A program made the position numbers and the translations under genes. This document shows, piece after piece, positions 16,071 to 22,517 of a DNA stretch of 37,094 bases (position 1 is the first letter of the stretch; each line of letters starts with the position of its first letter). This DNA comes from Octopus bimaculoides (Eukaryota): NCBI RefSeq assembly GCF_001194135.2, contig NC_068988.1:95569373-95606466 (forward strand), in the 5' to 3' direction. Below the pieces are notes generated by a model. It was not told the DNA's origin. It saw nothing but the letters and a program-made list of their open reading frames with translations, and did not search any database.

Positions 16071-16444
16071 TTTGAGAGATGAGGAATTATTTACATTTGA
16101 CGGATATTTGTCCTCGTCTTGTTTGTTGTTAACACAACGTTTCGGCTGATATACCCTCCAGCCTTCATCAGGTGTCTTGGGGAAATTTCGAACTTAGGTT
16201 CTCATTCCTAAGGTATTTTTCGATATTATTATTCAGGTCACTGCCTGGAATCGAACTCGGAACTCGGGTATATGGCGTAGTGGTTAAGAGCGCGGGCTAC
16301 GAACCCCAAGATTCTGAGTTCGATTCTAGGCAGTGACCTGAATAATATGAAGATCGAAAAATATTTGATGGAGGCTGGAGGGTATATCAGCCGAAACGTT
16401 GTGTTAACAAACAAGATGAGGACAAATATCCGACAAATGTAAAT
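16071..16444 (+). mobile_element. Family D copy 1: inverted 3' arm (16071-16262) plus tRNA-headed hammerhead SINE (16266-16444)
   Basis: Left arm is the reverse complement of the element from B-box to 3' end; right arm has A-box 16273-16283, anticodon loop CT-ACG-AA, B-box 16318-16326, an about 45-bp deletion, and ends at TGTAAAT. Confidence 0.9.
16131..16176 (-). ncRNA. Type I minimal hammerhead ribozyme (Penelope-type, palindromic stem III)
   Basis: Minus strand GACAC-CUGAUGA-A-GGCUG(GAGGGUAUAU)CAGCC-GAAA-CG-UU-GUGUU: stem I GACAC/GUGUU, 5-bp stem II, core intact, GUU cleavage triplet. Confidence 0.8.
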
Positions 16445-16586
16445 GTATCTGTTTGTTCACGACTACATGGGCCCCTAAAACCATTCTGGAAAACACCGTA
16501 CATGCTCGCAAGTGACGGCTGTAATTTTATATCCGGGTAGAAATGAATCATTCATTTACCGCCATGGTATTAGATATCCGAGTGAA

Positions 16587-16815
16587 GGCGCGTGTCGTAA
16601 TGGTTAGAGCCTTCCGACTTACGACCAAACAATTGAGTTCGATTCCTAGCGGCGCATTCTGTCCGTGAACAATTCCCTGAAGTTACACACGTCTATCTTT
16701 AAAAAACAAGTAGAAGGCGGTATTGGACAAACGTAGTCCTACGTACACAAAGAGACAGGATGGTCATTCTGGAACGTCTTTAAGCATAGAATTGACTGCT
16801 ACTAAACCCCAACAC
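16587..16815 (+). mobile_element. tRNA-headed SINE joined to the family E tail
   Basis: GGCGCGTGTCGTAATGGTTAGAG head, GAGTTCGATTCC B-box, then GACAGGATGGTCATTCTGGAACG tail shared with family E. Confidence 0.65.
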
Positions 16816-17005
16816 CAGCGACCCGTTACCCTCTTTTTATTTATTCATTTATTTACTTATTTTGTTGTCAGCCAGCCACAGATTCAACCGTTTCTTTGCC
16901 CTTCGGCATCTTTACAAATTCCGCAACATTATAAATTAATCGCGTTGGCTATAGAAACTAAGTCAGTTTGTCCAGAATAGAAGAAAGCCGTGACCATTAT
17001 CTTGG

Positions 17006-17038
<33 letters not shown>

Positions 17039-17189
17039 GTCAGCCGTCGTCCTCATCGTCGAGTGAAATGGGTGGGGTGGGTTTTACTTTTCATTATTTC
17101 TTTTAGTGACTGGGATGAGAGGGATAGAGAGAGGGAGAATATTGCCTGGACGCCCCGAAGGTTAGTCCTTCCTCCTTCAGGGAATGAGA

Positions 17190-17665
17190 GGTGGTTCGTA
17201 GTGGAAGGAAGATATATGTATAGGGTGGTGGTAGTGGTGATGGAGATCTGGTGGTGGTGGTGGTAGTGGCGAGATTTAAAAAAAACCTGAAGGCAACTCA
17301 ATTATAATAAGATGATGGGGGGGTGATAAAATAGGGGATCCAGGTCCATGTCTGTGTCTTTCCCCTCCCCGTTAACACCACCACCACAGGTTCCACTAAC
17401 GCCACTCCCATCAACACCATCACACAACATTCACCACCACCTCCACCACCACCTACCGCACTACCCATTATTACCACTGACCACCACCACGAGCCATCAC
17501 AATTACCAGCGACAACAACACCACCACCACCTCCACCATCAACCCCACCACTACGTCCCCTACTACCACCACTAGCAACCACACCACTGTCACTACCACC
17601 TCCACCAACACCACCCTAACCATAATCACCACCCCATCCACCACCGCCACCATCACACTCACCTT
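17190..17665. repeat. (GGT)n/(CAC)n degenerate trinucleotide tract
   Basis: Direct reading; source of the poly-H/T/V ORFs. Confidence 0.9.
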
Positions 17666-17985
17666 TCTCTTCTTCCCTCCTTTCTTTCTGTGGGTACGAA
17701 ATTTTATGACCCCAGGGGCAACTGTAATGAACCTTGTGCTTTAGGGATCAGTAAGGAGGGGGTTGAGAAAGAAGCAGGTAGTGGTGAGAGGAGGAGGAGG
17801 AGGCTATTCATATAATTGTTCCCTCCCTCCTCACCCCTCCATCTGCTTCCCCCCCCCCCACTACACGGACAAATGCAGACAGAATTTACGACTGGGTATG
17901 TGTGTGTACGTTTGTATGTATTTGTGTGTTTCTGTGTCTGTACGTATGTCTGTGAATATGCATGTGTATTTGTCTGCGTGTTCTA

Positions 17986-18042
<57 letters not shown>

Positions 18043-18433
18043 TATCAATGTTTGTCTATATATATTTGTGAATGTATTATCGCTTGTGTGCGTGTACATG
18101 TCTGTCCGTGTCTGTCTGCGTGTGTATGTGTGCATGCGCGCGTATTTGCATGATTCTGTGTCTATATACCTGTGTGTGTGTGTGTTTGTGTGTGTGTGTG
18201 CATTTGTATGTATAAGTATTGTATAAGTATGTTTATGTGTATATGTTGGTCGATGTGCATTTGTACATTCGTACTTGTATGTAGTTCTGTGACTGTAGTT
18301 GTTAGTGTATGTATGGTATAGTCGTCTCTGCGTATATATGTATAGGGCGGTGGTGGTGGTGGTAGTGGCCAGGTTAATGTTCGGCTGTGTGCCTGCATCC
18401 ATGTGCGTTTGTGTAGATATCTCTATCAATGTT

Positions 18434-20500: not shown

Positions 20501-20770
20501 CAGTAATCCCTTGACTATCGCAGGTGTTACGTTGGCGGAATTTGAACACACACGTACATGTACCTGTCCACTTTTCAATACTACACAAAGCCCTGATGCA
20601 AACAAACATGCAATTAGACACAGACAAGAATATATATGCCTCAATATACAGTAATCCCTCGACTATCGCGGGTGTTACCGTTCCAAAACCACCCGCGATA
20701 GATGAAAATCCGTGAAGTAGAAACAGCACTGTACTGTATATTTTTTAATATTATTTTTATAATTTTTATA
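20501..20770 (+). mobile_element. Tigger/pogo-like left ends, two direct copies (20501 and 20649)
   Basis: TA|CAGTAATCCCT(C/T)GACTATCGC(G/A)GGTGTTAC twice; resembles pogo/Tigger TIRs; no right TIR seen. Confidence 0.65.
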
Positions 20771-20839
20771 TATTTATTTTATTATAAATGCAAACCAACA
20801 CCACAGAGAAATCGACGTAAGCTTATGTTCATATATATA

Positions 20840-21236
20840 GGCGCAGGAGTGGCTGAGTGGTAAGTAGCTTGCTTACCAGCCACATGGTTCCGGGTTCAGT
20901 CATACTGCGTGGCACCTTGGCCAAGTGTCTTCTACTATAGCCTCGGAGCGACCAAAGCCTTGTGGGTGGATTTGGTAGACGGAAACTGAAAGAAGACGAG
21001 CGTATATATATATATACATGTGTGTGTGTGTGTGTGTTTGTCCCCCCACCCCCACACCAACATCGCTTTACAACCGATGTTGGTGTGTTTACGTCCCCGT
21101 AACTTAGCGGTTCGGCAAAAGAAACCGATAGAATTAAGTACTAGACTTACAAAGAATAAGTCCGGGGGTCGTTTTGTTCAATTAAAGGCGATGCTGCAGC
21201 ATGGCCGCAGTCAAATGACAAACAAATAAAAGAATA
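20840..21236 (+). mobile_element. SINE family B (tRNA head + CORE-like domain + internal TA/TG repeat), full length
   Basis: A-box TGGCTGAGTGG, B-box GGTTCAGTC, CACCTTGG(G)CAAGTG resembling the CORE domain, tail GTCAAATGAC..AAAAGAATA; four homologous copies. Confidence 0.9.
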
Positions 21237-21857
21237 TATTTCTGCACGCGAGTGTGTATTTATTTGTGTGTGTGTGTGTGTACGTCATGTGTGTGTGTGT
21301 ACGTCATATGTGTGGAACCTGTCTCTCGTGCGTCTTAGGAGAGTTATCTTTACGTATGCAACTGTGGGTGCATTTAATTTCTGTGTGAGTATGTATGTGC
21401 GTAGAAACGTGCATGCAGTAACTCTGCGTGATATGAACATGTGTGTAGTATGTGTTAGATCGGTCTGTTATCCCAGGACGCGTAAACGCATTTTTCTATG
21501 TTGTTCTGTGTGTGTGTGTACATATGTATGTACGAATGTATATACATGTGTCTGTGTGTTGGAGAGAGAGAGAGAGAGAGAGAGATGGATTGTGACACTA
21601 ACTGGGAACGAGTTCAAACAAAGAGCAGTTGTTCTCTGTGTTCTACCGTTGTGTATTTCTCTCGGAACCGTCAATGCCAAACTGTTATTCTCTTTGTGAT
21701 GTCATCCACAGCCAAGTTGTTGTCACACGTCACAATACAAACGCTGACACCATTCCTCCATTTATCACATCCATCGCCAATGCAACTACCACTACCATCA
21801 CCACCACCAACACTGTCCCCATCAATGCTATCAGCCCTAACATCACCAGAGTCAATG

Positions 21858-22060
21858 GGAGAGCCGCTACGTGGTCGCTCAACTGGCTAGAAATAGTGAC
21901 CAAATCATCTTTAAACCACTCTTTGCCGTTTTAGTGGGAAGACACGATGGACAATGTACTTCTCGGTTCCTGCAAATAGGAACAAACAGGTTTGTCATGG
22001 TTGGATTGCCATCGATCTTAGGTCTGCCGGACCAGGGATGGCCAGAGTCTAAACCACAAT
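21858..22060 (+). mobile_element. Repeat family E
   Basis: TACGTGGTCGCTCAACTGGCTAGAAATAG...GGTCTGC..ACCAGGG...CTAAAC. Confidence 0.7.
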
Positions 22061-22186
22061 TCGCACTGCCATGCGTTACCATCACCGTCAACACAATCGC
22101 CACTCTTATCATGTTTACATCCACCAACGTGAACGAGTCTCGATCTGCTCGGCCGGTGACAAGAACAATAACAACGTAGTTCTGTA

Positions 22187-22347
22187 TTTGAGAGATGAGG
22201 AATTATTTACATTCTTTACATTTGACGGATATTTGTTCTCGTTTTGTTTGTTGTTAACACGGGCATATGGCGTAGTGGTTAAGAGCGCGGCTACTAACCC
22301 CAAGATTCCGAGTTCGATTCCAGGTAGTGACCTGAATAATAATAACA

Positions 22348-22380
<33 letters not shown>

Positions 22381-22517
22381 TCGAAAAATACCTTAGGGAT
22401 GTGAACCCAGGTTCGAAATTTCCCCCCAAGACACCTGATGAAGGCTGGAGGGTATATCAGCCGAAATGTTGTGCCAACAGCAAACAAGATGAGGACAAAT
22501 ATCAGTCAAATGTAAAT
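22187..22517 (+). mobile_element. Family D copy 2: inverted 3' arm (22187-22260) plus full tRNA head-(TAA)n-hammerhead unit (22261-22517)
   Basis: Same sequence as copy 1; complete linker CCTTAGG..GAACCCAGGTTCGAAATTTCCCC..AAGACAC; ends at TGTAAAT. Confidence 0.9.
22430..22475 (+). ncRNA. Hammerhead motif, partly decayed
   Basis: GACAC-CUGAUGA(22435-22441)-A-GGCUG..CAGCC-GAAA-UG-UU-GUGCC; C-to-T in the palindrome and stem I mismatches. Confidence 0.6.

Follow-up and report, generated by a model that had tools for sequence, protein, structure and literature searches.

What defines a short interspersed element (SINE), and decides its class in repeat libraries, is its partner among the long interspersed elements (LINEs). 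For the Penelope-like elements (PLEs), a minimal hammerhead has been defined, and the motifs retrieved consistently have an extra base separating position 9 from 10.1, a G10.1-C11.1 pair and a palindrome at 15.2-16.2 (Cervera & de la Pena 2014, PMC4209133). Insertions of PLEs are 5'-truncated, often have an adjoining inverted 5'-truncated copy and carry a tail at one end only (Craig et al., PMC8557442). In the PLE Poseidon_Ac, reverse transcription has an internal start: an A/C-rich stem-loop located 85-92 nt 3' of the hammerhead cut contains two adjacent start sites, and the sequence that separates them constitutes the optional tail of 30-40 bp; both DNA strands are cut and extended, and cleavage by the hammerhead is protein-assisted and dispensable for insertion in vitro (Frangieh et al., PMC11167929). 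The present analysis concerns two loci within 37,094 nucleotides of the Octopus bimaculoides genome (contig NC_068988.1, positions 95,569,373 to 95,606,466 of the forward strand; "the window" in the following), each of which contains copies of a short unit with a tRNA-like head and a hammerhead-like motif. We think it fairly probable that both are old insertions of a non-autonomous octopus retroposon family, a tRNA-headed SINE with a PLE-type 3' module that would have been mobilised by a PLE enzyme acting in trans; this estimate is for the explanation as a whole, including the PLE partner.

Locus 1 (16071-16444) and locus 2 (22179-22517) share one common unit, with 89-94% identity in blastn and repeat comparisons, and are embedded in unrelated flanks, so that they are separate insertions, as had been claimed in an original prediction made from the sequence of the window. 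The 5.7 kb between the loci, which lie within the span of 16071-22517 given in that prediction, do not belong to the element, and neither blastn nor a profile search with nhmmer found a third copy of the unit in the window. From 5' to 3', the unit of about 245-285 nt consists of a tRNA-like head, a (TAA)n linker, a unique stretch of about 50 nt, a hammerhead-like core and a 3' segment. Directly 5' of the sense copy, each locus contains an inverted copy of its own 3' part, again as predicted, which is 5'-truncated and oriented head-to-head to the sense copy. This inverted arm is much longer in locus 1, where it covers the hammerhead, the unique stretch and (TAA)3 and reaches the T-arm of the head, and where the sense copy has lost about 45 nt according to the alignment. 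In locus 2, the inverted arm consists of the 3' segment and 26 outer bases, the reverse complement of AATTCCTCATCTCTCAAATACAGAAC. On direct inspection, both loci were found to lack a poly(A), a 3' microsatellite and a target-site duplication. When locus 1 is folded in silico as a single RNA, a near-perfect hairpin of about 150 bp is obtained (-232 kcal/mol, z -27), which is a potential ADAR substrate.

The architecture of the hammerhead, as far as it can be read from the sequence, is that of the type described for PLEs, and this assignment is supported by several lines of evidence. A descriptor written for the minimal architecture matches the window only at 16171 (-) and 22435 (+) and gave no match in 200 and 300 shuffles; a bulge of 1 was needed both here and for Poseidon_Ac. 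The tandem junction of Poseidon_Ac, built from the consensus deposited with PMC11167929 (File S1), served as positive control, and the descriptor recovers its experimentally tested hammerhead with bulge 1, a helix II of 6 bp, a helix III of 0 and a helix I of 3 bp. The minimal type I hammerhead of the PLE kind that had been predicted was detected with this descriptor only, by a match like that in Poseidon_Ac. Rfam, run at the gathering threshold and at E<=10, yielded no hammerhead in either locus or in a locus of the related group B (see below), and Hammerhead_1 was unmatched.

The core CUGANGA...GAAA with U16.1 H17 is present in both loci (minus strand of locus 1, plus strand of locus 2; Table 1). 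An intact core together with the AACGUU palindrome occurs in one of the three window copies, the inverted arm of locus 1, which reads GACAC-CUGAUGA-A-GGCUGG(AGGGUAUA)UCAGCC-GAAAC-GUU/GUGUU, with the predicted cut (slash) between 16136 and 16135. In locus 2 the palindrome is altered, and in the sense copy of locus 1 the core is degenerate. A single unpaired extra base follows A9 in the intact arm, the G10.1-C11.1 pair is present, and helix III is absent, as GAAAC is directly followed by GUU; the palindromic AACGUU is also present in group B. A canonical helix III (2 bp and a GUUGU loop, with the cut before AAC) was considered and rejected because helix I then fails to form.

Comparison of 14 related modules from three families supports the proposed pairing. 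Helix II is paired to 88%, and two of its pairs vary on both sides (UA/CG/UG and CG/AU/GC). Pairing amounts to 77.9% in the proposed register versus at most 47% when it is slid, and the covariation score is 0.205 versus 0.144 in shuffles (5/500). Of helix I, only 3 bp are kept across the 14 modules. A monomer is unable to form helix III. The hammerhead cannot fold alone, and the monomer is therefore probably inactive. In the octopus unit it would probably be retained as a part of a module that is recognised by the enzyme, not as an autonomous ribozyme, or it would be active only as a dimer or with the help of a protein. Scans with the core pattern, exact as well as degenerate, gave no match in the JGI metagenome contigs and in IMG/VR, collections that evidently are devoid of cephalopod DNA.

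Relatives were sought with the reading frame that is open through the module (MRTQVRNFPKTPDEGWRVYQPKRCVNNKQDEDKYPSNVNN..NSSSLKYRT). Among the 1.84 billion representatives of a representative library, 68 open reading frame (ORF) matches were obtained, and the probe matches two O. bimaculoides proteins, P0001 and P0002, as well as ORFs on octopus-like Logan contigs. P0001 is annotated as "uncharacterized protein". In P0002 (GCA_001194135.2), a dystrobrevin beta isoform X1, the annotated N-terminus, or first exon (MPMGIWHSGEGWRVYQPKCCVNNKQDEDKYPSK), is encoded by a copy of the element, which reflects either exonisation or an artefact of annotation. At the DNA level, the copies L001, L006, L007, L010, L014, L017 and L019 were recovered (Table 1). 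Wherever the 5' side is visible, that is, in both window loci, L001, L010 and L014, the head is linked to the module; the exception is the 5'-truncated sense copy in L019. In five independent octopus copies, seven arms terminate no more than a few nucleotides from the tRNA 5' end, and an inverted partner is located at the 5' end in five of six loci (both window loci, L001, L010 and L019; it is absent in L014). These sequences support the existence of a dispersed family in which a tRNA-like head is linked to a minimal type I hammerhead.

The octopus copies have two alternative 3' ends that are 26 nt apart, a short one (...AAATGTAAAT) and a long one (...CTCAAATACAGAAC, elsewhere given as ...TACAGAAC), and alignments revealed that the tail between them is present on one outer end only. 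ORFs that end in ...KYRT and the solo copy L014 show that the tail extends to ...CTCAAATACAGAAC, and the left border of locus 2 therefore lies at 22179, not at 22187 as had been predicted. A 9-bp stem between AGAUGAGGA and the tail, which we regard only as a lead, is predicted to fold in a composite sequence (z -4.05) as well as in group B (z -1.5 and -2.9), and one compensatory change distinguishes the families; no such fold was obtained in the decayed arm of locus 2.

The tRNA-like head contains candidates for both internal promoter elements of a tRNA gene. In locus 2, box A (TGGCGTAGTGG) is an exact match at head position +8, and direct reading revealed a box B-like motif (AGTTCGATTCC) that agrees with the consensus at 10 of 11 positions. 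As had been stated for the sense unit, a run of four T is missing: TTTT is not found in any arm of either locus, and the first T4 downstream of the unit follows after 81 nt in locus 1 and after 22 nt in locus 2. The 5' ends of the copies coincide with the start of the head, and the A and B boxes presumably drive RNA polymerase III (Pol III) transcription from the tRNA 5' end. Derivation of a SINE head from a tRNA has precedents in cephalopods, in which OR1 and OR2 are derived from tRNA-Arg.

A second group of relatives, group B (repeat QTPEEGWRTYRPKRCGNNNKDEDNSPKTLNDKNHQASSQKFRQ), yielded at least 3916 ORF matches in a profile search, nearly all of them on long contigs of the ENA assembly ERZ21867824. 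Three copies in 40 kb consist of a different tRNA-like head, a body of about 110 nt and 1 to 2.75 head-to-tail modules of 129 nt. The module reads CUGAAGA-A-GGCCGG...UCGGCC-GAAAC-GUU; position 7, at which this core contains an A, is free in the hammerhead. Group B, too, has two 3' ends, a short one (AATGATAAAA) and a long one (...TTTAGACAAC) located 33 nt further, and the tandem junction coincides exactly with the long end. Counted from the predicted cut, this end lies 86 nt in the 3' direction (compared to 85-92 nt in Poseidon_Ac). One tRNA-Pro call was made by ARAGORN on a group B head, only at -ps80. One of the copies (L016, 9913-10344) has a 12-nt repeat, TAAATTTACCAG, at both ends. A third family in the same assembly (L021) has yet another tRNA-like head, and its module ends in AAATGTAAAT as in octopus. 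The modules of octopus and group B are about 80% identical over 68 nt, and the alignment covers about 110 nt including both 3' ends. Three families with different heads have the head at an equal relative position, and different heads on one common tail are a classical sign that the tail comes from an autonomous partner.

By analogy with published PLE insertions, the copies were probably made by a Penelope-type enzyme rather than by that of a LINE. The outer ends of the window loci are the two alternative 3' ends, one with and one without the tail, neither has a poly(A), and at the inner junction two 5' ends meet, one complete and one truncated. According to the explanation that we favour, the 3'-most 130-150 nt would be a module like the junction of pseudo-long terminal repeat (pseudo-LTR) and ORF of PLEs, with a minimal hammerhead followed by an A/C-rich segment, and would contain two alternative cDNA start points 26 nt apart. 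A Pol III transcript would start at the tRNA-like head and read into the flank, the reverse transcriptase (RT)/GIY-YIG endonuclease of a PLE would bind the module in trans, and reverse transcription would start internally at either point. With an internal start, read-through Pol III transcripts need neither a defined 3' end nor a poly(A). The enzyme would prime on both cut strands, and joining of the two cDNAs at their 5' ends would generate a head-to-head pair, one copy complete and the other truncated, with the tail on one outer end.

Of the dependence on a PLE that had originally been proposed, the signatures in the element are present, namely the PLE-type module, the inverted partners and the absence of poly(A) and of regular target-site duplications, whereas no autonomous element with RT, GIY-YIG and a matching pseudo-LTR was found in the sequences searched, among which there was no octopus genome or repeat library. 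Three observations that had been named in advance as speaking against such a dependence were not made in the fetched copies: no LINE tail was recognised (octopus LINE tails were not among the sequences compared), nor was a separation of head and hammerhead or a routine presence of LINE-type target-site duplications with poly(A).

Nevertheless, a number of results weigh against a tRNA-headed SINE with a PLE partner. No long ORF with the module in frame was found among the 1.84 billion representatives; one candidate, P0044, was rejected as a spurious repeat protein. In the window and the fetched loci, a tblastn search with the Poseidon_Ac protein gave no match. An RVT_1 ORF in L016, the sole RT in the vicinity of a relative, is LINE-like according to our reading of YTDD and the surrounding motifs, and outside the hammerhead the module has no evident similarity to Poseidon_Ac, as judged by eye only. 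The octopus tail is 26 nt long, versus 30-40 bp for the PLE tail, with the start sites of reverse transcription placed by inference, and a tandem pseudo-LTR or partial tandem copies were not seen in any octopus-type copy. Of the three group B copies, two have about 95 nt of common sequence 5' of the tRNA-like part, and there the head is not terminal. Moreover, only about a dozen DNA copies are available, mostly from short Logan contigs. The head itself is another weak point: A and B boxes are present as in the tRNA-Arg(ACG)-like head of the original prediction, but ARAGORN found no tRNA in either locus with default or relaxed settings, the Rfam tRNA match is sub-threshold with 13 bits and E=9.7 (threshold 29), and by direct reading the anticodon triplet ACG occurs in locus 1 only, while the other four copies seen, including L010, have ACT.

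An alternative that we regard as unlikely is that the copies are 5'-truncated fragments of an autonomous PLE, the pseudo-LTR of which contains a nested tRNA-derived SINE upstream of the hammerhead. Strong 5'-truncation and tandem or inverted arrangement are usual for PLE insertions (PMC8557442), the head-less truncated copy in L019 would be such a fragment, and the common sequence 5' of the tRNA-like part in group B would belong to the host element. However, truncation would not be expected to stop at the tRNA 5' end, near which all seven arms of the five octopus copies terminate, nor to leave different heads at an equal relative position in three families. In addition, PLE coding sequence does not adjoin any copy, as inspected for the window ORFs and the fetched loci, and a Pfam search with the nine longest ORFs of the window revealed no transposon domain.

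Twin priming can yield inverted 5' segments. An ordinary LINE-dependent tRNA-SINE, with an incidental hammerhead-like motif and inverted partners generated by twin priming as in L1, is a second alternative, and SINEs make up about 11.6% of the genome of Octopus vulgaris, in which several LINE clades are active (PMC13282606). We nevertheless give this explanation little credence. The copies lack a 3' end of poly(A) or simple repeats as well as a target-site duplication, inverted partners in five of six loci are far above the yield of twin priming for SINEs, and an incidental motif would hardly have all PLE-specific features together with covarying pairs. The two fixed alternative 3' ends are kept between families, and a Repbase-wide survey found that SINE bodies are derived only from 5' regions of RTE and Vingi. 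A foldback transposon or miniature inverted-repeat transposable element, with the 3' segment as terminal inverted repeats and the tRNA-like sequence inside, is very improbable, since, although inverted repeats of 60-190 nt bound each window locus and locus 1 forms a near-perfect hairpin, the ends are asymmetric in that only one of them has the tail, every locus has its own inner junction, solo copies without an inverted arm occur (L014 and two copies in L016), and a target-site duplication is absent.

Table 1. Features of the two window loci and of related copies (window coordinates for the loci, contig coordinates for L015, L016 and L021)
Feature	Positions	Strand	Remarks
Locus 1, inverted 5'-truncated copy	16071-16265	-	In minus-strand order: part of T-arm, (TAA)3, unique stretch, hammerhead, 3' segment, first 18 nt of tail; 92% identical to locus 2 sense copy over 147 nt
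Locus 1, minimal hammerhead, best preserved in the window	16131-16176	-	Descriptor match: bulge 1, helix II 6 bp, helix III 0, helix I 5 bp
Locus 1, partial tail AATTCCTCATCTCTCAAA	16071-16088	-	In inverted arm only, missing at both sense 3' ends; reads NSSSLK in several translations, e.g. P0001 and P0008
Locus 1, sense tRNA-like head	16266-16338	+	Box A 16273-16283 (regular expression); anticodon loop CUACGAA; 92.7% identical to locus 2 head
Locus 1, remainder of sense copy (16266-16444)	16339-16444	+	Decayed linker, about 45 nt deleted, degenerate hammerhead UUGAUGG (16365-16405), 3' segment to short end AAATGTAAAT; nhmmer 16356-16445, E=8e-24
Locus 2, inverted 5'-truncated copy	22179-22260	-	3' segment and complete 26-nt tail (22179-22204, reverse complement of AATTCCTCATCTCTCAAATACAGAAC); extent from KYRT-ending ORFs and L014
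Locus 2, sense tRNA-like head	22261-22333	+	Box A 22268-22278; box B-like 22311-22321; Rfam tRNA 13 bits, E=9.7, at 22266-22326
Locus 2, (TAA)n linker	22334-22379	+	Microsatellite likewise placed in L006, L007, L010, L014, L017
Locus 2, unique stretch ATCGAAAAATACC...TTCGAAATTTCCCC	22380-22429	+	93% identical to locus 1 inverted arm
Locus 2, hammerhead-like motif	22430-22475	+	CpG-to-TpG change at 15.2 (GAAAUGUU); weakened helix I; descriptor: helix II 6 bp, helix I 3 bp
Locus 2, 3' segment	22471-22517	+	Ends at short end AAATGTAAAT, without tail
L001			Inverted and sense copy
L010			Inverted and sense copy; both arms reach tRNA 5' end
L014			Solo sense copy from tRNA 5' end to full tail, no inverted partner
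L019			Inverted copy and head-less 5'-truncated sense copy
L006, L007, L017			Contigs break in (AAT)n
L015, group B copy	9870-10439
L016, group B copy	9913-10344
L016, group B copy	3170-2866
L021, third family	10050-10165		ERZ21867824

The surroundings of the two loci are rich in other repeats. Another SINE-like family (GTTCTGCGTTCAAATTCCGCCGAGGTCAAC...) is present as inverted copies at 18469-18638 and 19061-19228 (81-94% complementary, 420-650 nt apart) and as a third fragment at 15987-16034, just upstream of locus 1. Another tRNA-like head is located at 16575-16665, about 130 nt 3' of this locus, and belongs to a different family (…GGCGCGTGTCGTAATGGTTAGAGCC…GAGTTCGATTCCTAGCGGCGC), and a direct repeat with 81% identity at 20887-20944 and 22778-22835 (GTTCCGGGTTCAGTC…CTTCTACTATAGCCTC) represents a third SINE-like family, one fragment of which follows locus 2 on its 3' side at a distance of 260 nt. 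The loci are surrounded by long (CT)n and (TG)n microsatellites and by ACC-rich stretches with a periodicity of 3 nt (15700-15805, 17880-18230, 18650-18760, 17380-17660 and 21764-21900). PLEs have been reported to favour microsatellites (PMC8557442); neither window insertion lies inside one.

If the proposed explanation is true, a tRNA-headed SINE that carries a PLE module and the insertion signatures of PLEs would extend the partners by which SINEs are classified to a third kind. In addition, the unit, small (about 260 nt) and with two mapped points of cDNA initiation, would be a useful natural template for studies of PLE integration, which is still poorly understood. In Octopus vulgaris, 893 "unclassified SINE" families are among the recently active elements, SINEs constitute 11.6% of the genome, and Penelope has also been recently active (PMC13282606), so that a partnership of PLEs and SINEs is directly testable in this species. 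High density of double-stranded RNA in octopus and heavy editing of Penelope in a lizard have been reported (PMC5625713). An insertion with an inverted partner forms a hairpin when it is transcribed, which, as we infer, would bear on the density of double-stranded RNA and on editing in octopus. In a wider and tentative reading, which we put at somewhat less than an even chance, a Pol III-type class of SINEs would be mobilised by PLEs in cephalopods and in at least one other eukaryote, and different tRNA-like heads would have captured the module repeatedly. PLE integration would then build an inverted partner into most insertions and would seed ready-made double-stranded RNA hairpins in the octopus genome, and the class could contribute to the "unclassified SINEs" and to the density of ADAR substrates.

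Several components of this picture were already known, i.e. SINE-like retroposons with hammerheads, the minimal hammerheads of PLEs, non-autonomous PLE derivatives, and retrozymes as PLE derivatives. In the searchable literature we found no report on a tRNA-headed SINE with a PLE module, and likewise none for cephalopods. Close counterparts are the minimal hammerheads in pseudo-LTRs of PLEs, which have in common with the octopus motif the core, the extra base after A9, the G10.1-C11.1 pair, a helix II of 5-6 bp, the absence of helix III, the AACGUU palindrome and a helix I of 3-5 bp (PMC4209133; Poseidon_Ac, PMC11167929). Pairs on opposite strands, 100-700 bp apart, have also been reported for them (PMC4209133), and in both systems the hammerhead is followed by a start region of reverse transcription, which is putative in the octopus unit, and by an optional tail. 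The octopus hammerhead differs in its position behind a tRNA-like head, in a unit without an ORF and without an adjoining RT/GIY-YIG gene in the loci inspected, and in the shorter tail of 26 nt.

In the schistosome repeat Sm-alpha, the hammerhead is canonical: it possesses a helix III as well as contacts between loops, and models of the Rfam type detect it. By this description it is set apart from the octopus hammerhead, which is of the PLE type without helix III and was missed by Rfam. Otherwise, Sm-alpha is similar in being a short dispersed retroposon of a few hundred nucleotides that is SINE-like and carries a type I hammerhead, and both Sm-alpha and Sj-alpha have been called SINE-like hammerhead retroposons (Ferbeyre 1998, in the account given in PMC8490949). 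The metazoan non-LTR retrozymes consist of repeats of 170-400 nt in tandem, each with a canonical type I hammerhead, are expressed as circular RNA (PMC7229834), and have been proposed to be PLE derivatives (bioRxiv 10.64898/2026.07.22.740005). They resemble the octopus family in being non-autonomous, in bearing a hammerhead and in the proposed use of PLE machinery, and the head-to-tail modules of 129 nt in group B are a further likeness. However, retrozymes have no tRNA-like head, whereas the octopus family has a Pol III-type head, is dispersed and contains one sense hammerhead per unit, and the second half of the label "SINE-retrozyme", under which the element had been predicted, does not fit it.

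MRC1 of Chlamydomonas (PMC8557442) is also short, shares its 3' end with an autonomous PLE and occurs in pseudo-LTR or multicopy insertions, but it belongs to the Chlamys/Naiad clade without canonical hammerheads and has no head derived from a small RNA. Conversely, the tRNA-SINEs of cephalopods (OK, OR1, OR2 and the Ceph-SINEs) have a tRNA-derived head with A and B boxes in common with the octopus unit, but OR2 is a CORE-SINE and the Ceph domain consists of CORE and an RTE 5' untranslated region, and neither is a hammerhead module; the Ceph domain was considered as the common module and rejected on the basis of this composition. Octopus SINEs have been reported as tRNA-Core, tRNA-Deu or "unclassified". 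Compared with all of these systems, the octopus unit does not have the LINE tail that a SINE is expected to have and is not a retrozyme in the strict sense; it is SINE-like, free of ORFs, and bears the signatures of PLEs.

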